Below are positions 1 through 53,100 of a DNA stretch of 64,000 bases, in pieces. The stretch comes from Saccostrea echinata (Eukaryota). Position 1 is the first letter of the stretch. Every line of letters begins with the position of its first letter. The notes under the pieces were generated by a model. It saw only the letters and a program-made list of their open reading frames with translations. It made no database searches and was not told the DNA's origin. The translations under genes were made by a program, and so were the position numbers. The stretch covers positions 4,216,001 through 4,280,000 of the forward strand of contig NW_026889772.1 in NCBI RefSeq assembly GCF_033153115.1, given 5' to 3'.

Positions 1-90
1 TGCGGTGGGATTCGTACCCGCGACGTAAGGATCATATCCTTACTCCGCGACTCCAACAAACGCTCCAACCACTGCGCCGCGCAGGCGACT
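1..90 (-). mobile_element. tRNA-derived SINE head (partial), shared with the copy at ~35440-35720
   Basis: The reverse complement contains a B-box-like GGTACGAATCCC and a tRNA-like head. It aligns with 35640-35720. Confidence 0.6.
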
Positions 91-430
91 ATTATGCTAA
101 TAGAAGCCTAAAATAGGGATATTCTTCACACATCCCAATCAATTGAAAATTAACGTGAATTAAGTTTTAAAAAATACATACTCATAGGACAAATAATTTA
201 AAGTCACTTAAAATAAATAAAGTTATTTTTTTCTGTTATCTAAATGTCTAAAGCCTTACTAGTTATTATTTCAAGTCATTTCATGATGCTGAGTTTTGAT
301 ATCCCATGCCGATCATTCCTTAAAAAGAATACTTGTTTCCCCTTCTTTTTTTAAAACTATTAACACTTGCAAAGAATTGAATTCATACCGATACATGTTA
401 TGATAGTAGCTCTTTAACATATTTTTCTAG

Positions 431-1677
431 GCACCCAGACGACATTGATCTTTTTTCTGGCGGATTGTCTGAGAGACGCCTCCGCGGTGCGTTAATCGGT
501 CCTACCTTTGCCTGTATCCTAGCTTACCAGTTCCAACAACTCAAGGTCGGAGACAGATACTGGTATGAGAATCCACACCCAATCTATGGATTTTCATCAG
601 GTACATATACTCCTTTTTTTACTTATAAAAAGCAAAAGCTTTGCCTAATAGAATTGTATATTTAGGACTGTTTTCTCTATCCTTTTATCGACATGGTATC
701 TAATTTCGTATGCATTACGCAACAGGCTACACTATCAACATTTTATATAAGAGTTTTGTAATAATATTTGTTTGTTATATTATTTCATGTGTTCAAATCT
801 TCGGCACCTATTCTCTATGATATATACGAAACAAGTTTTCTAGTTTTTGTTACTGTGACCAGTTAGTACTAAGTTAAGTGTTTTTTTTTCTACAGAACAA
901 TTAAAAGAGTTAAAAAAAGTAAGTCTTGCGAAGGTCATTTGTTCCACGGCGGAGGAGGGCAAAATTATGGACATCCAGCGGAATCTTATGATACGTACAA
1001 GCAGGCGGTAAGGCTTGTCTTCAAAACTTTATAACTCGGTCGCATTTAAATCAAATAATTAAGTAAATTTGAATTTCAAACATTATTTCTGATTTCTATA
1101 CAAAAGGGGGGAAAATTTTTGTTCATATTTTAGTAAACTACCTTGATTACATGTCGACTTTTCTCTTTTATTACTATATGAAGGCTTCATTTTCCATACA
1201 GACCAAAATGTAAATTTCCTTATCGATGTAATGTCTTTGAAACTATAAATAAGCTTATGGTTTTTTTCCGTTTTTACTATGATATGGGTAATAGAAAATG
1301 TTATTTTAAAAATCAATCTCTTAAATCTAATAAAACTTACAAAACAGAAATTTCAATTTTCAAAACTTTTTTAAAGGAACCCCCGGATGACCTGTAACCA
1401 AGTGTTAGGAGAGGGGCAGGAGCTGGGGTACCGTATAAACGTGTTTGGAACAAACTTTCTTGGTCATAGGGAACCGGCAATAAGAAATATACAGAGACCT
1501 GTGCGCATATTAAGGCGGATCTATTCATATAACCCCACACTGCAGCATCTTCTCAGAAACAGACCCCACAATGAAAACATTGCCAGAGAGGTTGTTCTTC
1601 CCACGAGGAGCGGGCATAGGAGGCGTATTGCGGTCAGCACACGGAGACCTCTCCAGTTTGATACCCATGTAGCGTGA
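431..1677 (+). CDS. Secreted animal heme peroxidase, copy A: last three exons (431-600, 896-1007, 1377-1677); the 5' part lies outside the window
   Basis: GT-AG exons splice in frame: HPDDIDLFSGGLSERRLRGALIGPTFACILAYQFQQLKVGDRYWYEN / EQLKELKKVSLAKVIC / Arg-rich tail. These are typical C-terminal motifs of the peroxidase-cyclooxygenase family. Exon sizes (170/112/301 bp) are identical to exons 10-12 of the full copy at 36065-40372. Confidence 0.9.
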
Positions 1678-3118
1678 CTTCGATACCCAGGATAACAGAA
1701 TTAATATGTACCTTGTGCTATTTAAGTATATGCGATTATGAAGGAGTACATGTAAATGTGGTATTTTATTTAAAGACACTGGACAGGCGGTAACATGACT
1801 AGGTTCCATTAACTAAATTCTCGTTTTCTTTTACTGACGACCCGCACTCCTGACCTACCCATTCAACTATATAGACGTTTTATCATTCTTCTGGTATACA
1901 GATATTAATAATATTTGTATTGTGCTCGTGCGTGTGTAGTAAGAATTATTAAATTTGTAAAACGATTTATGTTAATATAAAGTCTAGTCTTTTGTATGTA
2001 TGTATGGTCTGGGCTTTAGTCAATAGTTTAAATATTTTTATAATATTACTAGGTTGTTTTATTTGCCAACTTTATTGAAATTTTTGAAAGTTAGATCAGT
2101 CAAAACTTCTTTAGGCACAAATGGCGCCCAAGTTTACTCCTTAAAGCTATCCCAATAATAATTAAATAGTTTATCAAGAGGTGATTTATGACATTACCTA
2201 CCATGATGTTACATAAAGAGAGTTGGGATATGAGGGACAGTGTCTTGTAAATGACCCTGGAATTAAAGAAATAATTATTTAGAGTATTAGAAAAGGGATA
2301 CAGCCAAATCTATACGAATTCCTCTTCATGAAAAAGTCGAGGATATTCTTGATGTTTGATGAAGTGTCAAATAATGCAATGTTCATACAACTTCTTTAAT
2401 GCATATCAATTTCAGGGAGTGTTCAACACCCTCTGGGTGTAGATGATTATTTTAAAAAAAATATCTAAGAATGAATTACTCTATCGTAAATTTTGTATTT
2501 CTTTGAGTTTCGAACGGTTAAAATCTCAAATGCGTTACATGTACGATACGCATAAAAACCATGTTTTGCTTCTACCTGAAATAAGAAAAGTTGAGAAAGA
2601 AGTTAAGATTAACAGAAACATCACAGTAAGATTTCCGTAGTAAGAGGATAAATTCAGTCAAATTTTGAAGAAACTTGATACACCTAAAGTTGATTCTAGA
2701 CAAGATTATCCCAGAGGAAGTAGTAACTCCTACGAAGAAAATTAATGAAATCAAAGAGGTCAACATAGAGAACATGATAATTCTTAAAGAAAGTTTGGTA
2801 AACATGACCCAAACTTGTAGCGATCTATACTGGTGGCTGAGCATAGACCGGGATACTCCGAGATAGAGGCCAACAACTTCATTGTGACATTGGTTGATTG
2901 TGACCTCCAAAACCAAATTTTGTCGCTAAAAGGATATCTTGTCGTCTGTTTTCTTATATGTACTGTTTATGTATAGTAAGCTGTCCATGTAAAGATTTAA
3001 GTTAAAATACCCAAGGCAGGCGTTGATTTGGATACAGATATTCTCATAAAATGATCACCACAGGTGCTTGCAGATAGGAGTGACATTATTTCTCCACAAG
3101 TCAAAATTCAAATAATAA

Positions 3119-3870
3119 TGTGATAGAGTGATTTATTTCATATATTAATTATTACATTTCAGGATTACATTAATTCAGTTAAATTGTCATATTTATTTCT
3201 TTACAGCATTTCATTTACTGAATAAATCCACATGGAATTATTTACATCAATCTGTGTTCATTTAGTTATTTATAGATGTATGATATCACAGTGGTCATTT
3301 AAACCCCTGTCCCTTTTCTATATATATCTTGTGTAGTGTCCAGGCCAACTTGGATTTCATTGGTTGGTTAGTTTCCCTCTCTTTTGGTTTTTACCTAGTT
3401 AATTACTTTTGTTTGAGATCTTGGTCTTAGCAGACATATTGGCTTTTTGATATTATATGACTTAATTATGACAATGACCAAGGCAGGACAGAATGTAAGT
3501 TTACTTTTACTAATTTCATCTTCTCTATGTAATTGTTTATCTGCTAAATTACCAAATAATAATATTCTAATATAAAGTATGAAAGTTCAGTTTGTGTGAT
3601 TATTTTATGACTTTGTAAATATTCAGAGTAATAAGTATATTTTATATCTGTGAGAATAAGTGTGTAATATAGTAAAGTTCTATTTATATTATTCATACAC
3701 AGATCACTGAATAGAGTACAACTGTGTTCAGCTTTATATATATTTGGATTTCTGGCTCTATATCACATATAGGTATGATGTATATATATTTTGAATATTG
3801 TCTATATAATTATATTATTCTGGAAGAGTTCAGTATCATTTGATCTCATTGTTTATATATATTTCAGAGC
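3119..3870 (+). repeat. Left arm of the long inverted repeat (probable outer/U3 part of an LTR)
   Basis: Reverse complement of ~11827-12581; I counted only about 4-5 differences over the outer ~720 bp. Confidence 0.93.
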
Positions 3871-4132
3871 TGTGATACTACTGATAATACATTTATCCAC
3901 AACAACAACATGGTGTTTGTATTTATTATTCCTTAAACGAACCCCATTTCAATGGCATCCACGGTGGGATTGGCTGACTGCCCATTACGAGACTGACCGT
4001 GAGGATCTCACGCCGAGGAGGATCTAGGATCCACCGACGTGGTGTATAGTGTGTACAGATAGAGACTGTGATTATTCCGTAATTCATTCAAAGCTGGACT
4101 TTCAGTGAAAGTGACTTCATTAATTTTTCATT

Positions 4133-6690
4133 AATTTTGGATTAGAAAGCTAGGGACAGCCTTTCCCTATGGATGTAATGACAATGTCGATAGTGTTGGA
4201 AATCTTTCCAGTCCACAGTGTAGCAATGTAAATGTGATGGGACTTTTTAACCATACACAGAGACGTAAGCGTAGTCATGGGCATCGGTCTTACAATAAAC
4301 CTTTAATACACGATGTCTCTTTTGATTCGTTACTACCTTACGTAAATCAACAGTTAGGTCTACATCATATTCTCACCAAACTTTACTCTGTCCCTTTGAA
4401 ACTTTTAAATAGTCTTCTTGAAAAGGTCAAGGAAAGTCCATTTTTTGATTCCTCGACACCAGAATATAGGCTCGGATCTGTGATTATGGATATTGCAAAT
4501 CATAGGCTTTTTATACCCCCGCGTTTTACTGAAGAAAATGCAGCTAAAACGATCCATTTTTTCCTTAAACTTCAATATGCCAACAAAGGAATTGACGCGG
4601 TTAATATAAGTAATATTCTTAATCACAAAAGGGTCCAGTCTTGTATTCCACCATATTTCAAGTTAAAGACTACACCTTGTATTTCCTACAAAGATACATC
4701 GACTATTGCTTCCAAACTTTTTAATTACAAGAAAACTTTACAGGGCCTGGATATCGAATATCTGAAACATAATCCTCCATCGTGTTCATGTTCTTCTTCG
4801 CCCTATAACTATAGTCCTGCTGGGCACGTTATTACTGGTGACGTTAATATAGTTAATAATGAGGACCTTAGATCACTAATTTTAAAAGGTCCTAAATTTA
4901 GTGAACCCCGATCCTTCAACTGGCGTCGGAATTTCATAAATATTATGGATTCTGTAGAGGACTACGCCAGGCGATGGGCCAGACATGAAAACGAAGACCT
5001 TGACACTTTGTCAGAATGGATTAAATGTATCAGATGTATGTTAAAATCACGCATTAAAAGATTGAGGGGCAATATGAGAACCATCTATCCTTCTGTATTC
5101 AATAATCCAGAAGTGAAAAAAGAATTAGATAGATTACATGATCAGTACGTACTGGTCCCTGCTGACAAAGCAGGTAACACCATTGTCTTTGTTTGTAAGG
5201 CTCATTATATTAAATGTATTTTAGAGGAACTTGGATTTAATTCTACAAGTGGTAATCCAACTTATACTCGTAGTTCCCTTTCTAAGGAAGACATTCTTCA
5301 AAATCATATATCAGTTTTGAATATTTTGAATATTCCAAACAACCAAAATGAATTTGAATTACCATATTTATATTGGATTCCGAAACTTCATAAAAATCCT
5401 TACAAACAAAGATACATAGCGGGTTCCAGTAAATGTTCAACCAAGCCTCTTTCTTTACTCCTCACTAAGATATTAACAGTGGTGAAGGAGAAACTTCAAG
5501 AGTACTGTGCAAGTGGTGTAAATCAGATGTGGATACTTAAAAATTCCAAGGAACTTTTGGAAAATTTGAAATCGCAAGATTTTACCAAAATCAACAGCTT
5601 AAAAACTTATGACTTTTCTACTTTATACACAACCATTCTCCACGATAAATTAAAGTCCAGGCTTTTTGATATAATTGACAGCTGCTTTTTCAATAAAAAT
5701 GGAACTCGTAAATATACTTACCTTGTCATTGGTCATTTGAAAATTATTTTGCTAAAAAACATTCTGATTGTACACACAAGTACTCTGAAGTTGACATTAA
5801 AAAGATGCTTGAGTTTCTGATTGACAATATCTATGTGGTTTCTGGAGACCAGGTCTTCCAACAATCTATTGGAATTCCCATGGGTACCAATTGCGCCCCG
5901 TTATTAGCAGACCTTTTTTTGTATTCATATGAAGCAGAATTTGTCCAAAATCTTGTACGTGAAAAGAAGAAAACACTTGCTGTGGCCTTCAACTCGACAT
6001 TTAGATATATCGACGACGTATTGTCAATTAACAATGGCTATTTTCATTCTTATGTCGATACGATATATCCTTGTGAGCTTGAGATAAAAGATACCACAGT
6101 TTCATATTTGGATATTTTACTTGAAAAAGACGTTAATGGTAATCTAACAACCAAGCTTTATGATAAACCTGATGACTTTAACTTTTCAATCGTCAACTTC
6201 CCTTACTTATGCAGCAATATACCTTCATCACCGGCATACGGGGTATATATCTCTCAGTTGATTCGATACGCAAGAGCATGCTCTACGTATGAACAATTTC
6301 TAAAACGAGGTAAATTATTGACAAACAAGTTGATGAAACAAGAATATCAGCTGTCTCGTTTAAAGTCATCATTTCGTAAGTTCTATGGTCGATACAATGA
6401 CCTTGTCAGCAAATACAATTTATCATTGAGTCAAATGCTGACTGACGTTTTTCATACTAATTGTTAGGCCATTATTTACACACTGAATTGTCGACGGATT
6501 TTTCCGTTATTTCCCGATCATGACAAGGAGCACACGGCGGGTGTGACCGGTCGGCAGGGGATGCTCACTCCTCCATGGCACCTGATCCCACCTCTGATGT
6601 TTAGAGGTCCGTGTTTGCTCTGCTCCTATTTTGTATTGTTTTATGGACTTTTGAGCTTGAATACTGTTCGTTATCTCCATATATTTCATT
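4133..6690 (+). mobile_element. 5'-truncated Penelope-like retroelement of the N-terminal-endonuclease (Naiad) type, nested in the left LTR-like region of the Gypsy element
   Basis: The frame upstream of 4234 reads FWIRKLGTAFPYGCND, like the C-terminal end of a GIY-YIG domain. It is followed by a CxC linker (PPSCSC...AGHVITGD), PADK, YWIPKLHK, DFSTLYT, GIPMG and RYIDD. The ORF stops right after the thumb, with no C-terminal endonuclease. TTTCATT occurs at both ends (4126-4132, 6684-6690). Confidence 0.85.
4234..6467 (+). pseudogene. PLE reverse transcriptase ORF, split by a 1-nt deletion near 5740, with small in-frame deletions near 5508 and 6098
   Basis: ORFs 4234-5820 and 5805-6467. The sister copy at ~15700-15730 restores the frame (HLQNYFVKKHSDCTHKYSEVDIKKMLEF) and supplies the missing ESDTS. 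Confidence 0.88.
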
Positions 6691-7891
6691 CATTGAACTT
6701 TTTGTGACAATATATTCATTGTGATACTTAGAAGCTTGCCAGCACGGTAAGGTATTTTTTTTATTGTTGTGCTCAAAACACGTGTATTTTGGACTGACCA
6801 GTAAGACAGACATACTAGTGTTATAAAGTAAATAGCCTGCTTTATCCTTCCTGTATATAAGATAAATGTAAATATTATTTATTTTTGAGCAAAAGACAAT
6901 TGTAGTGTGCAAGAAATTAATTCTATTAATCTAAGATACCAGTTTCCATCCTACATTAATCTCTTTTCTCTTGATCAGCTGACCTTGACATTAGTGACCT
7001 ACATTTAGACTTTCAGGTACAGGTTGTTTACAGGTGATTTGAGGTAGTGTCTAGTGAGTTAATTGTTTTGATCAGATTTGTTGATCTAGTCAGTATTTAG
7101 TTGCTATATCACCCCTGTAGTAAATATGTGAAATATTTCATTTAATACTCAGATTGCTGTACTTTTAAGTACATATTCCTAAGGTCACATTACTTTGAGT
7201 AATCAGTGTTGGTGGCTTTCACCATTGTCCGTCATTTATTGTTTACCCATTGAATTCCTTTTCATTTTTTTTGCATTGTTGTTCCGTTTACTTTGATTTC
7301 GCGTGATTTTGTTTACATCGGGTATTTGACCCCTGGTCGAGAGTTCGTCACGCTTGAGCGCACATGGTGTACTGAAGAACAGAGTTATCTTCCTTGTGTA
7401 AGTTTGTAGTTAGAGTTATCCTTCATTACTTAGAACCACTTTAGTTATTTAGAATATAGTATTAGATTAAGGGTATATTTATTTAGGATTTAGTTAGTAC
7501 ATTCTTTAAACTTATATTTATCAAACTTATTAAGATATTTAATTTACTTTATTTTAATTTCAGCTTATTTAGAAATTTAATATTAAATTTTGTTTTTCAG
7601 GTGAATAATACTTTTGCATTTCAGTGAATTTTAGTGTTACATAGAATTAAAATTTAATTAAGTAGATATTTAGAATTGAAGTTTAATTAGTTTTATCAAT
7701 TAGTAAGATTTAATTAATCAACTTCATCTCAGACTCTTCGGATTGGATTTACCTATTGGATTCTTCAACTTCAGAGGATGTATTTTGAGATTTATTAAGA
7801 TAATTAAGGTAGATTTAGTTACTAGGTACCTAGCTAGTATTTAGTTAATTAGAGAAGTTTTATTTAGAAATCAATCAACAAACAATTCAAC

Positions 7892-9082
7892 ATGTCAACA
7901 GAATTTTCTCAAGAGGAACTTAATCAAATTACATCAGTTTTCAAGGAATTAAATATAAAACCAAAGGCAGATTCAGCACAGGATTTCAAACAATGGATGA
8001 CTCAGTATGTTGCACAAATGAATGAGGAGGAAATTGTCAATGTAAAAACAGAACCATACACGGATACTGGAAATTCATCAGCATCAGGAAGCACCATCAG
8101 TTCCCACATCCCAAAGATCTCTTGCTTTTCTGGAGACGGCAGCAAGAATGACACCACATATGATCTTTGTCGATATGAAGTTGATTGTTTGATCAAGGAA
8201 AAGTACAAGGAGGAAACAATTGCTCAGTCAATTAGGAGATCATTGCGAGGAGATGCAGGAAAGGTTGCCATGAGACTTGGTCCTAGAGCCACTGTTACCC
8301 AAATACTGAACAAGATGGAGAGTGTATTTGGCACTATAGAACGAGGAGAAACCATCATAGAGCAATTTTACAGTGCGCGACAAGAAAAAGGAGAGGATAG
8401 CGTGAGTTGGAGTTGTCGTTTAGAGGAGATTTATAGGAAAGCTGTTATCAAAGGAGTTGCAACGAAGGAGGATGCAAATGAGAAATTGAGATCAAAATTT
8501 TGGAATGGATTTCATCAATGGATTAAAGATATTACTGGATACAAATTTGATGCACTGACTAATTTTGATGAACTTAGGAAGGAAATCAGACTTGTAGAAA
8601 AGGAACATGAAACGAAGAAGGCACAATCAAATATGGCTGTAGCATCAAGTGAAGCTGAGAAAGGAGATGAGATTAAGGAACTTAAAGGAATGATTCAACA
8701 GCTTACTACCAAAGTCAGTGCTATGGAAGAAGGAAATAAGAGATCAGGACAACAGTGCACAAACAGGAATTACAAAGATTTTGGTGAACCATATGACAGA
8801 TTTCAGCCACAGTCCAGAAGAGGAAACTATGGATCTGGAAATTCATACAGTGGAAGTCCTCAATACAGGAATTACAATGGTCCAAGATATAATCAGGGAT
8901 ACGGCTATGATTATGGATATAGCGACAATCAGGACTCTGCTTTACAAGAGACAGAGGATGGAGAACCTATATGTTATAGGTGCAGACAACCTGGACATAT
9001 AGCACGTAGATGTCATGTGCGTTTGGACCACAGCAGAAGACATTTAAAAACCAGTAGACCTTCGTTGCGGGGCAGACGATAG
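7892..9082 (+). CDS. gag: Ty3/Gypsy Gag (capsid-like domain plus CCHC zinc knuckle)
   Basis: Intact 396-aa ATG-initiated ORF. It has a Gypsy/PNMA-like capsid region (FSGDG...IRRSLRGDA...FYSARQEKGE), a Gly/Tyr/Asn-rich linker and CYRCRQPGHIARRC. Confidence 0.9.
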   Translation: MSTEFSQEELNQITSVFKELNIKPKADSAQDFKQWMTQYVAQMNEEEIVNVKTEPYTDTGNSSASGSTISSHIPKISCFSGDGSKNDTTYDLCRYEVDCLIKEKYKEETIAQSIRRSLRGDAGKVAMRLGPRATVTQILNKMESVFGTIERGETIIEQFYSARQEKGEDSVSWSCRLEEIYRKAVIKGVATKEDANEKLRSKFWNGFHQWIKDITGYKFDALTNFDELRKEIRLVEKEHETKKAQSNMAVASSEAEKGDEIKELKGMIQQLTTKVSAMEEGNKRSGQQCTNRNYKDFGEPYDRFQPQSRRGNYGSGNSYSGSPQYRNYNGPRYNQGYGYDYGYSDNQDSALQETEDGEPICYRCRQPGHIARRCHVRLDHSRRHLKTSRPSLRGRR

Positions 9083-11686
9083 GTCAATACAGGAGAAGCC
9101 CTAATAGGAGTAGAACCAGTGAATTAGTAGGGAGTACTTCAGAAGTTGAAGCAAGTTTAGAAGGAAACTTAGAGCATTGATAGACACTGGATCTACTGTG
9201 TCAACAGTTAGCTTTGATTTTTATATGAAACATCTTAGTCACTTAGAACTTCATCCAATAGAAGAACTTTTAAAAGTGGAATGTGCTAATGGTCAACAAT
9301 TGCCATATCACGGATACATCGAGGCTTCCATCATCAGTAATGGATTACCACAATCATCAGAGGAACATCAGTTTCCATTACTCGTTGTATCAACAAGCAA
9401 TTATAACAGTACAGTGCCACTACTTATAGGAACAAATATACTACAACATATGCTAGATGATGTCAAAGACAAATATGGAGACAGATATCTACAGGATGCT
9501 GCATTATTTACACCATGGTATCTAGCTTTTCGAGGAATGACAATACGAGAAAAAGAACTTGCTCGCAACAACAACAGACTTGGAATTGTAAAATCAGCTG
9601 AAAATCACTGTATTATCATACCACCTAATTCAACAGTTTCTATATCTGGATATGTCGACAAAGCTATACCATATCAGTTTACAACAGCTGTTCTACAAGC
9701 CACATCCTGCTCTGTAATTCCATCAGACCTGGATATTGTGCCATCACTTACAGACTATTCCTATCCAGCCAATCATGTGATAAGAGTGGACATTGATAAC
9801 ATCACAACAAGGACAGTACAAGTTCCACCTAAATCTATACTTTGCAAGCTACAACCTGTGAAAGTAGAACCAAATCAGACAGATATTCCTTGTTCTAACC
9901 TCCAGCAAACCAAAGATGTCCTGAATTTAGTAAAGATTGAAGAAGATGGGCTTATACTTTCAGAAAAACAAGGAGCAGAACTATTATTAAGAAAGTATGA
10001 AGATGTGTTTGCCAAGTCAGACATTGACATAGGACACACTAACATCGTAAAACACAGAATTGAGCTACATGACGATACTCCATTTAAACAAAGACCAAGG
10101 CATATACCACCTGCCATGTTTGAGGAAGTCAAAGATCATTTAAGGAAGCTTTTAGAGGGAGGAATTATAAGGAAGACTAAGTCACCTTGGTCGAGTAATG
10201 TCCTTTGTCGGAAGAAAAACAACGAACTGCGCATGTGTGTAGATTACCGACAGTTAAACCTTAGGACAAAGAAAGATTCATATGCATTAGCACGAATCGA
10301 AGAAATTTTGGGTACCATCAAGTTGAGTTACATGAAAGTCACAAGGAAAGAACTGCGTTTACTGTTGGACCTTTAGGTTTTTACGAATATCATCGCATGC
10401 CATTCGGTCTAGTCAACGCACCTGCTACATACCAAAGGCTAACGGAGGACTGTTTTGAAGGGCTCCACCTTGATATATGCTTCATCTATTTAGATGACTT
10501 GATAATATTTTCCAAAACATATGAACAGCATTTAGAGCGGTTGGAAAAGATATTTCAGCGACTAAGGGAAGTAAATCTGAAACTGTCACCAAAGAAATGC
10601 GAATTTTTCAAAAGGAAAGTAAAATATGTAGGAAACATTGTTAGTGAGGAGGGGATAGAACCAGACCCGGAAAAGATCAGCAAGGTACAGAACTGGCCGC
10701 AACCAAGAAATTCAAATGAAGTTCGCCAATTCCTGGGTTTCGTTGGTTATTACCGGAGATTCATTGAGGGATTTTCAACAATAGCACGCCCATTGAATGA
10801 CCTTCTACCAAATACCAAGAAGAAATCTAGAAAGGGAATAAGAACACCAAAAGAACCAGACAAGTGGAGATGGGGAAGTGAACAGGAACAAGCCTTCAAG
10901 ACACTAAAGGAGAAACTTACAACCTATCCAATTCTAGGATTTCCAAATTACTCTTTACCCTTTGAGCTACATACAGATGCCTCGTCATCAAGCATCGGCG
11001 CTGTATTATATCAGCCACAAGAAAGATTCAAACGGGTAATAGCCTATGCCAGCAGGAGTTTGTCCAAATCAGAAAAGAACTATCCTGTCCACAAATTGGA
11101 ATTTCTGGCTTTAAAGTGGGCTGTATGCGAGAAATTCAGAGATTACTTATATGGAGGAACATTCAAGGTTTATACAGACAACAACCCACTCACCTATGTC
11201 TTAACATCTGCGAAACTCGATGCGATAAGCCAAAGATGGATTGCTGATCTAGCCAACTTCAACTTTGAAATATTATATCGACCTGGATCACACAACGCAG
11301 ATGCAGATGGATTAAGCAGGATACCAAACCAAGAAATCATAACATCTGATTCCATTAAGACCATATGCAACTCAACTGTATCCAATAGTCCCTATGTACA
11401 ATGCTTGTCCATATCTCCATCTTCAGTTGACAATCTACCAGACTTGAGTGATCAGTCAGAGGTTGATATTCGTCGTCATCAGTACAATGACCCAGTACTA
11501 AGATTTTGGATACCATACGTGCGAGATCAGTACAAGCCAGCAAAACACCATCTACCATACAACAACATCCAGTACCATGCTTTACTTCACAAGAATTTTG
11601 ACAAACTTAGATTGAGAGATGGGATCCTCATTAGAGAAACAATAGTGAATGAGAAAAAGAAATCACAGATACTTTTACAAACATAA
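9058..11686 (+). pseudogene. pol: Ty3/Gypsy Pol (protease-RT-RNase H), disrupted and truncated before integrase
   Basis: Motifs: LIDTGS (protease); SPWSS, RMCVDYRQLN, MPFGLVNAPATYQR, IYLDD (RT); TDASS, YASRSL, LEFLAL, TDNNPL, NADADGLSR (RNase H). There is a frameshift at ~9168 and a deletion at ~10310 that removes the first catalytic Asp region. Homology ends at QILL (~11678). Confidence 0.92.
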
Positions 11687-11826
11687 ATATTTTATAACAA
11701 AACATACATGTAGATCACTTGCCAGATAGCACGGTCAAATGAAGAGTTATTTCCCTTTAATTGTGCTCATAGATAAAACATTAAGAGTTATCTTTCTTAA
11801 TCAATAATATGTACAAAGTATAAACA

Positions 11827-12581
11827 CTCTGGAATATATAGATAAAACAATGAGATCAAATGATACTGAACTCTTCCAGAATAATATAATTATATAGACA
11901 ATATTCAAAATATATATACATCATACCTATATGTGATATAGAGCCAGAAATCCAAATATATATAAAGCTGAACACAGCTGTACTCTATTCAGTGATCTGT
12001 GTATGAATAATATAAATAGAACTTTACTATATTACACACTTATTCTCACAGATATAAAATATACTTATTACTCTGAATATTTACAAAGTCATAAAATAAT
12101 CACACAAACTGAACTTTCATACTTTATATTAGAATATTATTATTTGGTAATTTAGCAGATAAACAATTACATAGAGAAGATGAAATTAGTAAAAGTAAAC
12201 TTACATTCTGTCCTGCCTTGGTCATTGTCATAATTAAGTCATATAATATCAAAAAGCCAATATGTTCTGCTAAGACCAAGATCTCAAACAAAAGTAATTA
12301 ACTAGGTAAAAACCAAAAGAGAGGGAAACTAACCAACCAATGAAATCCAAGTTGGCCTGGACACTACACAAGATATATATAGAAAAGGGACAGGGGTTTA
12401 AATGACCACTGTGATGTCATACATCTATAAATAACTAAATGAACACAGATTGATGTAAATAATTCCATGTGGATTTATTCAGTAAATGAAATGCTGTAAA
12501 GAAATAAATATGACAATTTAACTGAATTAATGTAATCCTGAAATGTAATAATTCATATATGAAATAAATCACTCTATCACA
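11827..12581 (-). repeat. Right arm of the long inverted repeat
   Basis: Reverse complement of 3119-~3870; identity decays over the innermost ~30 bp. Confidence 0.93.
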
Positions 12582-12726
12582 ATAAGAGATGGATTCATTA
12601 TATTTAAAGGAAGGAACTATTGAATTCTGAACACAGACATTTCTGGAAAAAAAGTTTTCATCAAAGTTTATTCTTAATTCAGTATGAATGACTGATGTAA
12701 TTCCTACTTCTTATGACAATACTTTA

Positions 12727-12885
12727 TTATTCTTCATCGGGGCAGTATTGTGTCTCTTGTCCTACATCTGATCAGTGAACGTTTCTATATACAGGTGACC
12801 GGTTGTGCTGTGTTGGCCGTCGAAGTCCATTCTTAACGAGCGGTGCGTTATGTACGTCCTGAACCAATCTGTACATCTCAAAGGC
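12727..12885 (-). pseudogene. Orphan duplicated terminal exon of the nacrein-like carbonic anhydrase, with a premature stop
   Basis: Matches 41950-42108 (AFEMYRLVQDVHN.PLVKNGLRRPTQ). TGG has become TGA at 12772-12774, and no upstream CA exons are present beyond ~13048. Confidence 0.85.
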
Positions 12886-13079
12886 CTGAAAAATTTATTG
12901 AGATCAGTTAAAAACAATTGAAAGTACTATAATCCTATGGGTTTAAGTGAATCGGTCCATTATTTTGCGTTCATTTTCATTGATAAAATACTAGGCAGTC
13001 TAGTTTATTTTCGTCTAGGCGAAAGCTTTTTTAATTCTGAAATCAACAAAAGTAATATAGAAGAAATTATATATAAAAT

Positions 13080-14761: not shown

Positions 14762-15865
14762 AATGAAATATATCTAGATAACGAACAGTATTCAAGCTCC
14801 ATTATACAATACAAAATAGGAGCAGAGCAAACACGGACCTCCAAACATCAGAGGTGGGATCAGGTGCCATGGAGGAGTGAGCATCCCCTGCCGACCAGTC
14901 ACACCCGCCGTGTGCTCCTTGTCATGATCGGGAAATAACGGAAAAATCCGTCGACAATTCGGTGTGTAAATAATGGCCTAACAATTAGTATGAAAAGCGT
15001 CAGTCAGCATTTGACTCAATGATAAATTGTATTTGCTGACAAGGTCATTGTATCGACCATAGAACTTACGAAATGATGAATTTAAACGATACAACTGATA
15101 TTCTTGTTTCATCAACTTATTTGTCAATAATTTACCTCGTTTTAGAAATTGTACATACGTAGAGCATGCTCTTGCGTATCAAATCAACTGAGAGATATAT
15201 ACCCCGTATGCCGGTGATGAAGGTATATTGCTGCATAAGTAAGGGAAGTTGACGATTGAAAAGTTAAAGTCATCACGTTTATCATAAAGCTTGGTTGTTA
15301 GATTACCATTAACGTCTTTTTCAAGTAAAATATCCAAATATGAAACAGATGTGTCAGACTCTGTGGTATCTTTTATCTCAAGTTCACCAGGATATATCGT
15401 ATCGACATAAGAATGAAAATAGCCATTGTTAATTGACAATACGTCGTCGATATATCTAAATGTCGAGTTGAAGGCCACAGCAAGTGTTTTCTTCTTTTCA
15501 CGTGCAAGATTTTGGACAAATTCTGCTTCATATGAATACAAGAAAAGGTCTGCTAGTAACGGGGCGCAATTGGTACCCATAGCAATTCCAATAGATTGTT
15601 GGAAGACCTAGTCTCCAAAAACCACATAGATATTGTCAATCAGAAACTCAAGCATCTTTTTAATGTCAACTTCAGAGTACTTGTGTGTACAATCAGAATG
15701 TTTTTTAACAAAATAATTTTGCAAATGACCAATGACAAGGTAGGTATATTTACGAGTTCCATTTTTATTGAAAAAGCAGCTGTCAATGATATCAAAAAGC
15801 CTGGACTTTAATTTATCGTGGGGAATGGTTGTGTATTAAGTTGAAAAGTCGTAAGTTTTTAAGCT
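14762..15865 (-). mobile_element. Naiad-type PLE, 3' portion (RT C-terminal half plus 3' UTR)
   Basis: Near-identical reverse complement of ~5597-6690. ORF 15179-15580 contains GTNCAPLLADLFLY and RYIDD. Confidence 0.92.
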
Positions 15866-18196
15866 TTTTAAGCTTTTGCAATGAAATTTTATATCATAAC
15901 TCCCTATGGCCCCGCCCGTTCCTCTTAAAGTGTCCCGTCCCCCAACCCCCACCACCCTACGATCACCACCCCTCTAGATCCGTATATGCTCTTCTTTTTT
16001 CCTTAAGCAGGGGACACAGATTCTCTGAATTAGCTTGTTAGTATTGCATTTATATTTGGATATTGTGAAAGCGTATCCTGTTTTATACTGAAACTGGTAA
16101 ATAAATTACATTCTCACCTTTAGCTTGATGCATAATGTGAAAATGCTATGAGGATGTTTTTTAAAGGTCATTTATTGATAAAAATGTAGCCAAGACAAAA
16201 TATTGAAAGCCTATACACTTACCATATTGAGTGACTTGTACGTTGAGATTTGTGCTACATGCATGTAAAAACTCTTTTGTTGTTTTTGTAGACTAAGTCC
16301 TTGTTCTAAAATGTACATTTTTGACCCAATTCAACAGCCCGCACTTTTCCAATGACAATCAAATTATATTTTCCTGTGGCAGAAAAAGCCTGAATCCATT
16401 TTACTTTGCAATATTATTCTTAAAAACTTGAAAATTTAGAGACATTGATGATGAATATTTCAACCCAAATATGCATGGGTTTACACATAATAGATCTGCC
16501 TTTTCCCAAAATTTAATCAATAATAATATGTTGTAGTAATCTGCTGGACCTTTTCGGACAATCTGTTTTTGTGCTATCTTGAATTTATGTCGATTGCTAA
16601 ACTTGAGTTGGTTGGTAAGATTGATGGACCTTATGGTGTGTAATGTAAACATAATTTCCAAAGTTTAGTCCTTGAAAATGTTGAAAATAAATAATCTGTC
16701 CCTGCCTTATTCCTACGGTTTTCATTTTATTCAGTGAAAGCGGGGGACAAAAAGGCAATTTTTATATTCCATTGTGACCTTGAACTTTGACTTTCTGTCC
16801 GTATTTACCAATTCAGGTGATGCTATATGTAGTTATTGTCCACCAGAACTGTAATTTTGTTTACTCATGCTGTTTAAAACAAATGTATTAGTTGGGACAC
16901 AGAAAAAAATGTGTTGTTTCCTTAAATTTCTATCTAAATCGAGCCATTTTGCCCTTGGCCTTTGACCTTTTGTCATGAAAATTGATTTTTCTCTTTGTTT
17001 TTGCTGTTGTGTACCACATAACTAAATTTGGTTTCAAACCATTTTAAAATACTCAGGTATTTATATGGAAACTGATCGTAGATTCCTATTGCCCTTGTCT
17101 GGAATTCTTTAAAAAAGCATAAGTTTGTAACCATGGTAACATGAAAACAAAATATGAATACCAAGTGTTTCTTTGCAGTTTATATTAGATCTATATATAG
17201 ACTTTCAAACCAATGTATTTATTTTTTCCCATATGTCCGCAAAATTTTATACCAGGCTTTTCAAAAGAGCCTAAAATCTACAATTTTTCCACAGAAAAAT
17301 CCTACCTAAAACCGGGCGATGTTTTTTCTATTAGGTAAAGTTACTCAAATACTAGAAATTATCTAAAGAACTATAAAAATGATGTATTTTGGCAGAAAGA
17401 TGAAATCATGTAAATATCTTGTTGTATTAAAGAGTTTTAATTAGTCAAAAAGGGTCATTTTTCATCAAAATTTAGCTTTTTTTAAGGCCATGAAAAATGT
17501 ATGTTGGTTGCCATGGTAATCATTGACCATAGCAACCATTTTATTATGAATTTTAGTTTCATACATCAATATAGGAATGTGTGCCAAGTTTCATAAAAAT
17601 CTAAGACCTAGCGTGCCACACTTTCTATATAAGAGTTTAAATGCTTACAGAGAATGGCTATTAATTGCTTGGTAATATTATAATAGATTCTCTCTATTAT
17701 AGAAGATATTTTTTTAAGATTGTAGGGGATGTGATGTGTGTTTTTCTGAGGGATGATATTCCGTTTGAGTATATCGTTTAATTTCTCATTATATCTCCAT
17801 AGACCATGTGCTGAGGCATAGGAACGTTTAGTTACGTTTCCTTCTACGAACACCTTGGCCTACACAAATTGCAGAAATCAGCGATCCTCATTTTTTACAT
17901 GAATATACACAACGTTTGGAAACGCCTTTCCCCAACAGAAACTTACTTCTTATTGTTTATTTTGTAAAGAAATTATTTCCCATCAATTTGAAAAAAAAAA
18001 TGCTATTTTGTTTATACATTTATATACTTCAAATAATCTTTGAATAAAAAAATTATAGGATAATTTTGTTAATCGAGAAACGAATCTAAAGCCTTCGGCT
18101 TTATAAGGTGCACAACATCTTAAAAGATCAATCAATCTGAATGGAAAAAATGTACAACAAAATTCAGAACTCTCTGAATGGTTGAAAAGACGGACA

Positions 18197-19220
18197 AATG
18201 AAAAATATGGAGATAACGAACAGTATTCAAGCTCAAAAGTCCATAAAACAATACAAAATAGGAGCAGAGCAAACACGGACCTCCAAACATCAGAGGTGGG
18301 ATCAGGTGCCATGGAGGAGTGAGCATCCCCTGCCGACCGGTCACACCCGCCGTGTGCTCCTTGTCATGATCGGGAAATAACGGAAAAATCCGTCGACAAT
18401 TCAGTGTGTAAATAATGGCCTAACAATTAGTATGAAAAACGTCAGTCAGCATTTGACTCAATGATAAATTGTATTTGCTGACAAGGTTATTGTATCGACC
18501 ATAGAACTTACGAAATGATGACTTTAAACGAGACAACTGATATTCTTGTTTCATCAACTTATTTGTCAATAATTTACCTCGTTTTAAAAATTGTACATAC
18601 GTAGATCATGCTCTTGCGTATCGAATCAACTGAGTGATATATACCCCGTATGCCGGTGATGAAGGTATATTGCTGCATAAGTAAGGGGAGTTGACGATTG
18701 AAAGTTAAAGTCATCTCGTTTATCATAAAGCTTGGTTGTTAGATTACCATTAACGTCTTTTTCAAGTAAAATATTAACATTTAATGTTATGCAGATTATT
18801 ATAAATATAAAGAGATATAAGCTTTCAAGACATCACAATGCTTAACTTCTAAATTTTACAGATTTTCTTTAAAATGTTATTGGGTTCTTTTGTATTGTCA
18901 ACATTAAGGAGCTTAATTAATTTAAAGACACTAATTTTTGTATAACAAAACCATTAAATACATTATTATATCATCATCATCAATTTTACATTTCGAGATA
19001 AAATATAACTGGTCTTCTATATCATTTTGATCACCCAATTTACATATATTTTTATATTCCTTAAGAAATTATTTTGTCGACATTTAGATATATCGACGAC
19101 GTATTGTCAATTAACAATGGCTATTTCCATTCTTATGTCGATACGATATATCCTGGTGAACTTGAGATAAAAGATACCACAGAGTCTGACACATCTGTTT
19201 CATATTTGGATATTTTACTT
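18197..19220 (-). mobile_element. Naiad-type PLE 3' end (18197-18773, -) with an inverted upstream piece (19076-19220, +)
   Basis: Both pieces are near-identical to the 4133-6690 element and abut in element coordinates at atattttactt. Confidence 0.85.
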
Positions 19221-20689: not shown

Positions 20690-22143
20690 CATATGGAAAT
20701 AACGAACAGTATTCAAACTCTTATTCCTCTTAAACAATAATTAAATTGGGAGTAGAGCAAACACAGACCTCCAAAAACATCAGAGTCGGGATCAGGTGCT
20801 ATGGAGGAGTAAGCATCTCCTGTCGACCGGTCATACCAGCCGTGTGCTCTATGTCATGATCAGGTAAATGGAAAAATCTGTAGACATAATGGCCTAAAAA
20901 TTAGTATGAAAAACGTCAGTCAGCATCTGACCGAATGATAGATTGTATTTGCTGATAAGGTCATTGTATTGACCATAGAACGTGGGAATTGTTGACTTTA
21001 AACGAGACTAGCTGTTGATATCCTTGTTTAATCAACTTATTTGTTAAAAGCTTGTCTCGTTTTAGAAATTGTTCGTTCGTGGAGCATGCTCTTGAGTATT
21101 AAATCAACTGGGAGGCATAAACTCCATATGTAGGTGATATTTGTTATTGCTACATAAATAAGGGAAGTTGACAAAAGAAAAGTTGAAGTTATCACGTTTA
21201 TCAGAAAGTTTTGTTGGTAGGTTACCATTAACGTCATTTTCTAATTAAATATCCAAATATGAAACAGATCTGTCAGACTTTGTGGTATCTTTTATTTCGA
21301 GTTCAGAGGGATAATTCTATTCAATGAAGGGATGAAAATAAATATAGTAAATAGATAAAACGTCGTCGATATACTAATACCTTAATGTCGAGTTGAAGGC
21401 CAACGCAAGTGTTTTCTTCTAATGTAAAAGTTTTTGAATAAATTCTGCTTCATATGAATATAAAAATAGGTCTGCTCATAACAGGGCGTAATTGCAATTG
21501 GTTCCTATGGGAATTGCGACATATTTTTGGAGGACTTGATCTCTAAAACTAAATAGATATTGCCAATCAGAAACTCAAGCATCTTCTTAATATCAACTTT
21601 GGAGTACTTCTGTGTACAATCAGAATGTTTTCAACAAAATAATTTATCAATTGACCAATGACAAGGTAAGTAAATTTACGAGTTTCATTTTTATTGAAGA
21701 AGCAGCTGTCTATAATGCCAAAAAGTCTGGACTTTAATTAATATTTATCGTAGAGAATTGTTGTATAAAGTGTTGAAAAGTTGTACGTTGTGATATTATT
21801 GATTTTGGTAAAATTTCATGATTTCAAATTTTCTAAGAGTTCCTTGGAATTTTTAATGTATCCATATCTAATTTACATCACATCTCGAATATATTGTTGT
21901 ACAGTACTCCTGAAGTTTCTCCTTCACTGCTGTTAATATTTTAGTGAGGAGTAAAGAAATAGGCTTCGTAGAAAATTAACTGGAACCCTATATGTATATC
22001 TGTTTGTAAGGATTTTTATGTAGTTTAGGAATCCAGTAAAGGTATTGTAATTCAAATTCAATTTGATTGTTGGGAATACTAAAAATATTTAAAACTGACA
22101 TGAACGATGAGTATTAGTTGAATTACCACTTGCAGAATTAAAT
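20690..22143 (-). mobile_element. Older degenerate Naiad-type PLE (RT plus 3' UTR)
   Basis: Collinear with ~5230-6690, with many indels and stop codons. Confidence 0.85.
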
Positions 22144-50100: not shown

Positions 50101-53100
50101 CAGGCGATGGGTCAAACATGAAAAAGAAGACCTTGACACTTTGTCAGAATGGATTAAAAGTATCAGATGGATGTTTAAATCTCGCATTAATCGATTGAGG
50201 GGCAAATATGAAAACAATCTATCTTTCTGTCCTAATAATTCAGAAGTGAAAAAAGAATTAGATATATTACACGATCAGTATGTACTGGTCCCAGCTGACA
50301 ATGCAGGTAACAACATTATCTTTGTTTGGCTCATTATTTGATTTGTACTTTAGAGGAACTGGGATTTAATTCTGCAAGCGGCAATCCAACTTATACCCAT
50401 AGTTCCCTTTCTAAGGAGGAAATTCTTCAAAATCATATGTAAGTTTTAAATATTTTTAATATTCCTAACAATCAAAATGAAATTTGAATTACCATGCCTA
50501 CACTGGATTCCTAAACTTTATACAAATCCTTACAAGCAAAAATACTTAGCGGTAAATGTTCTACCAAGCCTCTTTCTTTACTCCTCACTAAAATATTGAC
50601 AGCATTGAATGAAAAACTTCAAGAGTACTGTACAACGATATATTCGAGAAGTGGTGCATGCGGATACTTAAAATCTCCAAGGAACTTTAAAAAAAAAAAA
50701 AATACCAAAATCCATAACATCAAAACGTACGACTTTTATTAATCACATTATGGAACTATTCCTCACGATGAAGTCCAGGCTTTATAACATAATAGCTGCC
50801 TTTTCTATAAAAATAGAACTCGTAATTTTACTAACCTTGTAATTGGTCATTTGCAAAAGCAAGATTACTTTGTTAAAAACATTCTGATTGTACACACAAG
50901 TACACACGAGTACACTAAGTTAAAAGATGGTTGAGTTTGTGATTGACAATATCTATGTGGTTTACTGAGATCAGGTCTTTCAACATTCGGTCGGAATTCC
51001 CTTCGGTACAACTGCGCCCTGTTATTAGCAAACCTATTTTTGTATTCATATGAAGCAGAATTTGCTTAAAAATTTCTACAAAAGAATAAGAAAAACACCT
51101 CTTGTGACCTTAAAAATTGATCTCGACATTTACATATATCGGGGACGTATCATTAATTAGCAATAGTTACTTCCATTCCAATGTCGACTTGATATATCCC
51201 AGTGAACTTGAAATAAAAGATACCACAGAGTCTAATACATCTGTTTCATTTTTGGATATTTTACTAAAAAAAGACGTTATGGATAACCTAACAACAAACT
51301 TTAATGATAAACGTGATGACTTCAACTTTTCTATTGTCAACTTTCCATACTTATGTAGCAATATACCCTTATCACCTTCATATGGGATTTATATTTCCCA
51401 GTTGATTCGATGCGCAAGAGCATGCTCCATGTGCGAACTATCTCTAAAACAAGGCAAGCTATTGATAAACAAGTTGATGAAACAAGGATATCAAAAGTCT
51501 TGGTTAAAGTCATCATTTCGCAAGTTCTATGGTCAATATAATGACTTTGTCAGCAATTGCAATCTATCATCAAGTCAAATGCTGAATGACATTTTTCATT
51601 CTAATTGTTATGCCATTATTTAAGGGGATGAAGGACACTTGGTCTCATGACTCAGTTTAACAACGTCATAGTCTCTAATAATACAAGTGCAATACCTGAT
51701 ATAAATCATCAGTAATTGTAAAAAGAATTTGACAATTTGTTTTGCTTCAGCATCTTATATAAAAATATTAAAAAGTTTAAACTTTTTTTGTAAAATATTG
51801 ATAAACTACAGGAAAAATTGACCCACTCTTTTGTTTCCCTACACTGTGCGTCCAACAAGTCAGTGACGTCATACACGATCATACTCGGTGAATACACGGG
51901 CAGTATTATTACATAAAAACGGGTCAAAATCAGCACATGGTAGGGTATTTTGTAAATTAGAGGACACTAAATATATTTTTACACTGTTTTTGACAGAAAT
52001 CTTTTGCAGGTATGTCTTATTTCACTTATTTAGCTTACGTGTGCCGTCATAGTTGGTTTTTCCCGTACTCGAGAAATGTAAACATGACATGTTTGGAATG
52101 CCGTGTGTAGTGTCAAATAAATAGAGGTTTTTTATGAGATACAAGAATTGAAAACTTAAGATATGATTTTAGCTATCGTGTAAGAATGATGGTGGTAAGT
52201 ATGATTAAATCTTACATGCATATTGTAGGTGTCAAATGATAATAGAAATCATGTACGAATGTATCAAATAATAACAGTGTTCATGTAATATTATGTCTCC
52301 AATTAATGAAATACATGTAACTATGTATTGCAACTATGTACATTTCTAATAATAATAGTGTAATTGTAAGACTTTGTCAAATGATAATTATATTTACCAT
52401 GTGTGCTCGTGACACATTATAATAGTCATCATAAGACTGCAAGTATATACCAACTGTAGAAGTGATCGTGTAAGTTTTTGACGATAATCATGTCAGATTG
52501 TACATCTTCAAAAACGATTGACATCAACATGTAAGGTTTGTATCAAATAAAAAGTATTACTAGTGTAAGATTGTGTCAATAAAGTGTAAACCAATTAATC
52601 ATTCCTGTGTTTCAAATCACAGCCATAGAATAAATGAATATTCCATATTCCTTTACAAATGCTTTTTGGTTAAAAATTTTTCTTACCGTTGTTTCGTATT
52701 TTCCCGGGTACTCTAGTACACAGATTCACAAAATGTAACGCAGTTTGCGGCCAGTAAATGGTATTTTGGGTTTTAATGTTGATCGGTGACTGGAATTTCC
52801 CTTCACAATCATGCCAACATGGCGTCACCAGATGCCACTGTGTAGGCCCTGTAAAGTATTAGAGATCATTCCTGGTTTTGTTTTGGAAGAAATTATTTGT
52901 ATGTACAATTACTTCATGGCCTGTTTTCACACCTGTGTTTAAACCAGCAGGATTGTTCATAAGAAATCTAAAGAAACATTTCGTGGTAACACACATTGTT
53001 ATCTAAGGCAAGCTTAAAGGAAATTTGATTTCTCTGAAAATGTGTTTTTGTCTGCTTTTTACAAGTCTGTTTCTAGGACCTCAAAGAACCTTGAATCATA

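Follow-up and report, generated by a model that had tools for sequence, protein, structure and literature searches.

An inverted-LTR insertion of an ordinary Ty3/Gypsy retrotransposon in Saccostrea echinata, with the same U3 terminus at both borders

DIRS elements have inverted terminal repeats, use a tyrosine recombinase instead of a DDE integrase and leave no target site duplication (TSD). Ginger elements have TG..CA ends, a short TSD and a Gypsy-like integrase, are bounded by TIRs, lack gag and RT, and spread as DNA. Ordinary Ty3/Gypsy elements (Metaviridae) are recognised by the pol domain order PR-RT-RNase H-integrase downstream of gag, by direct TG...CA LTRs with a PBS and a PPT, and by a short TSD of 4-6 bp. 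Complex LTR retrotransposons, as described in bioRxiv 10.1101/452573 (citing Sabot and Schulman 2007), are three-LTR tandems with flanking TSDs that come from abnormal template switching or pre-integration recombination, and PMC9278108 and PMC12657518 report proviruses in which aberrant strand transfers led to deleted or asymmetric LTRs and to inversions. In addition, concerted integration by retroviral integrase works with donors each bearing only the U3 end (PMC3579926). A literature search for natural inverted-LTR or U3-U3 insertions gave nothing specific.

The window analysed here, 64,000 nucleotides of the S. echinata contig NW_026889772.1, holds a copy of a Ty3/Gypsy family at positions 3119-12581 whose LTRs are inverted. 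A preliminary description of this DNA had reported that the unit starts with TGTGA and ends with TCACA, that ATAA stands on either side, and that both ends arrived in a single event, all of which agrees with what we find at the borders and at a paralogous locus. On direct inspection of the sequence, ATAA at 3115-3118 is followed by TGTGATAG, and ATAA at 12582-12585 is preceded by CTATCACA. About 38.7 kb away, in a direct segmental duplication, the target site is unfilled and present as a single copy, ATAG (41810-41813); the locus reads ...CAAATAATAG followed by GAGATGG..., and is collinear with both flanks of the unit (by BLAST, 2500-3138 corresponds to 41202-41833, and 12581-13049 to 41809-42280). 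Because the empty site is collinear with both flanks, the 4-bp duplication is real and the two ends of the unit arrived together. Moreover, the paralogous flanks have diverged by 5.9-6.3% as opposed to 0.4% for the inverted arms, and the insertion therefore postdates the segmental duplication. An inverted-LTR unit with a TSD and an empty counterpart is thereby confirmed as a real observation in the assembled sequence.

The family LTR is ~1013 bp long, and neither arm reproduces it in full. The left LTR (3119-3951, forward strand; delimited by BLAST to eight intact copies) starts with TGTGATAG, i.e., with U3 position 1, and ends with ...CCCCATTTCA, and it is without a 168-bp internal segment, here called B (LTR ~736-903). 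The deletion lies between two copies of a 22-nt imperfect repeat, its junction falling within the common heptamer ATTGTTT (3848-3854); segment B is kept in all 33 of the 33 other aligned LTRs, and a genome search found the deletion junction at no other locus among the matches listed. The right arm (11677-12581, reverse strand; delimited by BLAST to both LTRs of eight intact copies) consists of 905 bp and is the reverse complement of LTR positions 1 to ~901; it retains segment B, is without the last ~110 bp of the LTR, and has U3 position 1 as its outer end. An inverted repeat of ~99% had previously been noticed by eye between 3119-~3870 and ~11827-12581, and BLAST indeed aligns 3116-3869 to the reverse complement of 11827-12584 over 758 bp at 98.7%. 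The arms are, however, longer than the ~750 bp given at the time, and seemed to stop at ~3870 and 11827 because of the internal deletion in the left LTR. Over the 737 bp common to both they differ by three substitutions and one 1-nt indel (99.6% identity), with a stretch of 421 nt that is 100% complementary. When compared with 28 other LTRs, each of the four differences is a singleton in one arm, whilst six states are private to both; the arms can be shown to have been identical sister copies at the time of insertion. In LTR coordinates, the right arm has its inner end at 899-901 and the deletion in the left LTR has its right edge at 897-903, a proximity that random landing within the LTR would produce in roughly 7 of 1013 cases. 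This shared LTR site (~897-903) suggests one coupled error.

Between the arms, the copy has the anatomy of its family up to the point where it is cut. The PBS (TGGCATCCACGG...; 3953-3968, forward strand) stands one base past the LTR end, and every reference copy has the identical sequence behind its 5′ LTR. Within the Gypsy leader, collinearity with the references is broken by an unrelated, highly repeated, non-LTR-retroelement-like insert (4129-6691, forward strand), around which position 4128 corresponds to reference 1391 and position 6692 to reference 1381, and which is flanked by an imperfect ~10-12-bp duplication of the leader. This repeat has many 5′-truncated copies in the window sharing the 3′ end at ~6690 (BLAST), a weak match to RVT_1, and atlas neighbours belonging to DUF8422/RVT_1 clusters. 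Beyond the insert, the copy is collinear with reference positions 1381-6428. Its gag ORF (7892-9082, forward strand) is open, has PNMA and zf-CCHC matches and, at 396 aa, equals in length that of intact copies; the pol remnant (9177-11678, forward strand) comprises protease (DTG), reverse transcriptase (YLDD), with a frameshift near 10376-10397, and RNase H. The earlier statement that gag, PR, RT and RH are cut where integrase begins holds, as pol stops at residue ~908 and the Integrase_H2C2 zinc domain of intact copies begins at 909. The junction with the arm had been placed at ~11678-11690, but the right arm adjoins pol directly at 11677/11678, with 2 bp (AC) common to both partners as microhomology. 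A 160-bp probe for this junction matched at full length here only, among the matches listed by the genome search.

The parent family is an ordinary, recently active Ty3/Gypsy. Intact relatives with integrase and direct LTRs, for which the preliminary description had recommended a search, are present: they have LTRs of ~1013 bp in direct orientation, a PBS, a PPT (GAAGAGGGGAAGTA) before the 3′ LTR, a gag of 396 aa with a zinc knuckle, and a pol of 1481 aa in the order PR-RT-RH-IN (RVT_1 403-561, RNase H 640-769, Integrase_H2C2 909-964, rve 977-1074). Their TSDs are of 4 bp (GAAA, GTAG, AAAA), as is the ATAA of the window copy, and their normal U5 end, ...CATTTCA, has only TG/CA in common with the U3 end (TGTGATAG...). 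Sixty-four LTR starts were counted in the genome, forming direct pairs with ~8.1-kb spacing at 12 loci and a single inverted pair, that of 3119-12581, which makes one of the 13 paired loci inverted. A three-LTR tandem of the same family lies on contig C7.

Like these relatives, the window copy has the family sequence, the gag-PR-RT-RH order, TG...CA termini, a PBS, a 4-bp TSD and precise integrase-type borders. Unlike them, it has no direct LTRs: its right border is an inverted U3 position 1 instead of a U5 end, integrase gene, PPT and 3′ LTR are missing, and the left LTR is short of 168 bp. The complex three-LTR elements of bioRxiv 10.1101/452573 resemble it in being cDNAs rearranged outside the chromosome and inserted as a unit with a normal TSD, but their LTRs are all direct and their outer ends are U3 and U5, whereas here one LTR is inverted and the outer ends are U3/U3. 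Defective proviruses share with it one-LTR partial deletions, short-homology breakpoints and inversions ascribed to reverse-transcription errors; a provirus with U3 at both outer borders, however, is not described in the accessible parts of PMC9278108 and PMC12657518. Two U3 ends were likewise inserted in concert in RSV integrase assays with single-U3-end donors (PMC3579926), though in the test tube and from two donor molecules, whereas the window copy is a natural germ-line insertion with its inner parts joined. The comparisons with Ginger and DIRS made at the outset do not apply, since intact members have a normal Gypsy integrase and direct LTRs. In contrast to DIRS, the family pol carries Integrase_H2C2 and rve and no tyrosine recombinase, and the window copy has a 4-bp TSD; in contrast to Ginger, the unit has gag, PR, RT and RH but no integrase, and no further copies among the matches listed.

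The DNA that was inserted demonstrably bore the U3 terminus at both ends and entered one ATAA site in one event. Given the one site, the one event and the family-typical 4-bp duplication, it follows that the element's integrase joined both ends. As to the origin of such a substrate, there is in our estimate about an even chance that this was one aberrant insertion of the ordinary Gypsy family, with a single rearranged cDNA from template switching, carrying U3 termini at both ends, as the substrate; that both breakpoints fall on one LTR site speaks for a single rearranged molecule made in reverse transcription. If such interpretation is correct, the aberrant cDNA would have been made by template switching inside the particle. 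A plus-sense strand would have started at U3 position 1, ended near LTR position 901, and been joined via the 2-nt microhomology to minus-sense synthesis at pol position ~6228, which would then have proceeded backwards across gag, the PBS and the final ~110 bp of the LTR. On arriving at that same LTR site, near position 901, synthesis would have jumped from the second to the first copy of the 22-nt imperfect repeat, skipping 168 bp, and the LTR would then have been copied back to position 1, the end of the template. The product would be a linear molecule, each side of which ends in a genuine U3 terminus that integrase can use. Once inserted, such a copy would be incapable of the normal RNA-to-cDNA cycle and presumably has not multiplied since, the nested non-LTR insert, the RT frameshift and two private mutations per arm being later gains. 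Even so, the template-switching route is a model, fitted to a pair of junctions; the 168-bp deletion, lying between pre-existing 22-nt repeats, could be independent later slippage, the coincidence of breakpoints could be due to chance or to a local hotspot, and the 2-bp microhomology suits host end joining equally well. An inversion-based precursor, with a small plus-strand fragment beside an intact inverted 5′ half, was also considered and rejected, as it calls for one more inversion, through 5-7 bp, and explains away none of the coincidence.

The preliminary description had proposed, as one of two options, a one-off integration through the U3 ends of two cDNA molecules. The one-off character and the use of the U3 end on both sides are upheld by the borders, the TSD and the empty site, whilst the evidence does not show two separate molecules. 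It is possible, though we would call it doubtful, that two cDNAs from one particle, or one cDNA and a broken left-end fragment, contributed one U3 end each, that their inner ends were joined by host end joining, and that the 168-bp deletion arose independently. The inner ends after resection would in that case be pol ~6228 and LTR ~901. Such an origin accounts equally for the empty site, the TSD and both borders. Pairs of donors, each with a single U3 end, are the routine substrate of concerted integration in vitro (PMC3579926), end joining typically leaves microhomology like the 2 bp at 11677/11678, and sister arms are to be expected if one source element gave both cDNAs. It requires, however, that two cDNA left ends meet in one complex and that one molecule be shortened by ~2.8 kb and the other by ~8 kb, and it leaves to chance the coincidence between the end of the right arm and the edge of the left-LTR deletion.

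An assembly artefact, in which the animal's genome would lack the internal join or have the right arm in another orientation, is improbable. Dozens of family copies with ~95% similarity are present in the genome and can mislead assemblers, but both borders are precise junctions of a U3 end with host DNA, with a matching 4-bp duplication and collinear paralogous flanks, and an artefact would demand two genuine insertions of opposite orientation in one place. The unit is no fold-back chimera, because its arms differ by four private changes and the 168-bp deletion, and there is no repeat to collapse on, because the internal join has only 2 bp in common; the nearest N runs are 12 kb from the unit. 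An origin after integration, either by two opposite insertions into the same ATAA followed by an ~11-kb deletion or by chromosomal rearrangement of a normal copy, appears very improbable, even if sister-like arms would also be expected from one master element inserting twice in quick succession. The normal right border, ...CATTTCA, is not the complement of TGTGATAG, and a precise inversion of a normal 3′ LTR is rejected because its U5 and U3 ends have only TG/CA in common. No inversion or deletion can make U3 position 1 adjoin the duplicated ATAA exactly, and no third ATAA or U5 end is left inside the unit. Furthermore, with ~64 LTR copies in 923 Mb of genome, a second hit on those 4 bp is much less probable than a single aberrant integration.

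That the copy belongs to an undescribed inverted-LTR family mobilised as DNA by an integrase of Gypsy or Ginger type, an enzyme that would accept TG..CA inverted ends with a 4-bp TSD, can hardly be credited, given that it is the sole inverted pair among 64 LTR starts, that both internal junctions are unique among the matches listed, and that arms and interior are pieces of an ordinary Gypsy family. This is the other option put forward earlier, a new family mobilised in trans, and it is not supported, the other 12 paired loci all being direct; direct LTRs elsewhere together with a unique junction had been named beforehand as the mark of a one-off rearrangement, and this is the pattern found. 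The genome searches score about 40 candidates per query, so that uniqueness here means ‘none found’ and is not proof. Neither the junction probes nor the scan of LTR starts gave any sign of DNA-level propagation of the unit among the matches listed, and several independent insertions with a common inverted architecture and internal junction, the hallmark of a new class, were not encountered. A DNA transposon with long TIRs and captured Gypsy debris was excluded as well, the arms being the family LTR and the interior collinear with intact copies. Since both internal junctions are unique to the locus and the inverted pair stands alone, we regard the unit as a one-off: a malformed single copy, born of a rare natural mishap in reverse transcription and integration, that gives no basis for a new class of mobile element. 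There is little probability that U3/U3 inverted-LTR insertions arise repeatedly as Gypsy elements replicate in this genome, as opposed to a single accident; were this so, they would be natural, integrase-competent, TIR-bounded intermediates on the way from an LTR retrotransposon to an integrase-mobilised DNA transposon.

Same-terminus integration has until now been known mainly from test-tube assays, and the copy is apparently a clean natural example of a retroelement integrase putting DNA with the same LTR terminus at both ends into the germ line, the proof being the empty paralogous site. The two breakpoints at one LTR site may preserve a record of aberrant cDNA assembly and point to a possible pause or break site in the family's reverse transcription. 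For annotation, LTR finders that need direct repeats will miss or mis-split copies of this kind.

Two sequence landmarks near the breakpoints deserve mention. An internal purine run, GAGAAAAAGAAA, lies 16 nt before the breakpoint in pol, but is a weak candidate for a central PPT because the interior has 11 such runs. LTR position ~901 could be a putative poly(A) site, with a T-run of pol priming on the poly(A) tail; no copies ending there with such a tail turned up in a search. TATAAA occurs 13-18 nt upstream of this position, and the LTR subtypes diverge only from ~935 onward, which is no less compatible with a start site lying downstream of the second TATA-like repeat.

The Ty3/Gypsy unit at 3119-12581 is bounded by an inverted repeat (3116-3869 against 12584-11827; 98.7% over a 758-bp BLAST alignment, with one 421-nt stretch perfectly complementary), and both borders can be read directly: ATAA at 3115-3118 and then TGTGATAG on the left, CTATCACA and then ATAA at 12582-12585 on the right. 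Both flanks are contiguous in a direct segmental duplication ~38.7 kb downstream, where the empty paralogous site at 41810-41813 reads CAAATAATAG followed immediately by GAGATGG. Therefore the 4-bp duplication is real and the 9.46-kb unit is one insertion, later than the segmental duplication, just as the preliminary description held for the inverted termini, the target-site duplication (TSD) and the single arrival. Divergence is 0.4% between the arms versus 5.9-6.3% between the flanks. The nearest N runs to the unit are far away, at 24.5-25.2 kb. The segmental duplication itself (1-3118 and 12582-13049 against 35956-42280) is ~6% diverged; in its downstream copy ~168-bp units are repeated in tandem over ~1.7 kb (37110-38800), an array missing from the upstream copy.

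Eight full copies of the same Gypsy family were fetched as references, and alignment to them gives the anatomy of the window copy, whose structure rests on one assembly. The left LTR (3119-3951) has its first 735 bp joined directly to its final ~110 bp, the 168 bp between them (B, LTR ~736-903) being missing; B is flanked by two imperfect 22-nt direct repeats, each starting ATTGTTT, and the deletion junction falls within this heptamer at 3848-3854. The PBS and leader run from 3953 onward, and beyond a nested insert (4129-6691) the leader, gag, PR, RT and RNase H are collinear with the references (6692-11678), gag being open and RT frameshifted near 10376-10397. At 11677/11678 pol residue ~908 abuts the reverse complement of LTR ~901, with 2 bp (AC) in common, and the right arm (11677-12581) is an inverted LTR 1-901, with B and without the last ~110 bp. 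Arm ends at ~3870 and ~11827, as first described, are thus not borne out; it is solely the absence of B from the left LTR that made the arms seem to stop there.

The nested insert is unrelated and highly repeated, and ~10-12 bp of leader sequence are imperfectly duplicated around it. Many 5′-truncated relatives with a common 3′ end lie in the window (14762-15868, 18197-18774, 20691-22221, 49561-51622 and others). The repeat has a 528-aa ORF without a Pfam match, which the atlas places beside DUF8422 clusters, RVT_1 being present in some of these, and downstream of it a weak RVT_1 (reverse-transcriptase) signal; it seems to be an abundant, non-LTR-retroelement-like sequence.

The right arm's inner end lies at LTR 899-901 and coincides to within a few bases with the B deletion's right edge (897-903), for which the chance is roughly 7 in 1013 if the landing site is random in the LTR, and this suggests one coupled error. 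On its bottom strand the unit reads plus-sense through LTR 1-901, then minus-sense from pol 6228 back via gag, PBS and LTR tail to ~902, and finally minus-sense through LTR 741-1. One plus-strand break or stall at ~901/902 could account for both breakpoints: a primer ending at LTR 901 would have re-primed at pol 6228, whilst the template end at 902 would have forced the nascent strand to jump, to land on the upstream look-alike repeat and to run off at U3 position 1, leaving a genuine U3 end at each side. Work on proviruses documents aberrant strand transfers yielding asymmetric LTRs, deletions and inversions (PMC9278108, PMC12657518), and in plants TSD-flanked three-LTR elements, complex yet with direct LTRs, have been put down to pre-integration events (bioRxiv 10.1101/452573). 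This route through a single rearranged cDNA has, in our judgement, an even chance of being correct. Its main rival, the two-molecule route of the preliminary description with two cDNA ends in one intasome and the inner ends joined by host end joining, is no worse a fit to the 2-bp microhomology but has to treat the breakpoint coincidence as chance, and we find it rather doubtful.

As for the borders, a normal copy ends on the right in CATTTCA, and in the unit this place is taken by the complement of the U3 start, which abuts the duplicated ATAA precisely. Neither inverting a normal insertion nor deleting from it can bring the U3 start to exactly this position. That two independent insertions hit the same 4 bp is far less probable than a single aberrant event, and a misassembly would call for two insertions that are both real, oppositely oriented and at the same site. 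The border sequences therefore indicate that integrase attached a U3 end to each side of one staggered cut, in support of the one-off U3/U3 integration proposed earlier. Retroviral integrase performs concerted integration in assays from donors with a single U3 end each (PMC3579926), making such an event biochemically plausible.

A new inverted-LTR family mobilised in trans had also been proposed. With about 40 candidates scored for each genome query, and among the matches listed, a 160-bp probe of the pol/inverted-LTR junction matches in full at the window locus only, all others covering just one half, and a probe of the B-deletion junction likewise matches in full only here. Since both junctions are confined to this locus among those matches, and B is present in 33 of 33 other aligned LTRs, a new element class is rejected, on the terms that the preliminary description itself had set. 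What remains is an unusual structural form of an element of known kind; it records same-end integration in nature and, it seems, a coupled reverse-transcription error, which makes it moderately interesting. No account of a natural Gypsy insertion bordered by U3 on both sides came up in an incomplete search of the literature, so novelty is not thereby established.

When the arms are aligned with 28 other LTRs, all four differences between them prove to be singletons in one arm, with the family state in the other, and another six states occur in both arms and in none of the others; the arms were identical at insertion and have gained two changes each since.

The source is an ordinary Gypsy family. 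At least 40 copies in the 923-Mb genome are 93-96% identical to the 751-bp left arm, and a 25-nt probe finds 64 LTR-start sites (34 forward, 30 reverse; control 0 and 2), with same-strand pairs at 12 loci, spaced 7.6-8.2 kb (one a triple on contig C7), and the window pair as the only opposite-strand one. Reference copies have direct LTRs of ~1013 bp (TGTGATAG to CCCCATTTCA), a PBS (TGGCATCCACGG) starting one base past the 5′ LTR, a PPT (GAAGAGGGGAAGTA) upstream of their 3′ LTR, and open ORFs for gag (396 aa) as well as for pol (1481 aa; RVT_1 at residues 403-561, RNase H 640-769, Integrase_H2C2 909-964, rve 977-1074). The LTR pairs are identical within several of them, showing that the family has recently been active. 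Their PBS-gag leader is unusually long, about 1.38 kb (3969-4128 plus 6692-7891 in the window), with no ORF of at least 100 aa. A 4-bp TSD is exact in three of seven and matches at three of four bases in a fourth; matching flanks are absent from L034, L035 and L038 (G000:C56, C84 and C51), where inter-element recombination could have followed insertion.

The C7 triple (G000:C7:3494541-3511800; L009-L011, L031) has three same-strand LTRs spaced exactly 8118 bp (LTR-internal-LTR-internal-LTR). It is thus one of the tandem ‘complex’ elements that are put down to unequal recombination or to template switching before integration. From ~935 the LTR 3′ end occurs as two diverged subtypes across the family, suggesting recombination between subfamilies. 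In one otherwise normal copy (L033, G000:C46:4786201-4795313; LTRs L008/L017) the last ~45 bp differ between the 5′ and 3′ LTRs, one having the majority subtype and the other the minority subtype, as in the window's left LTR.
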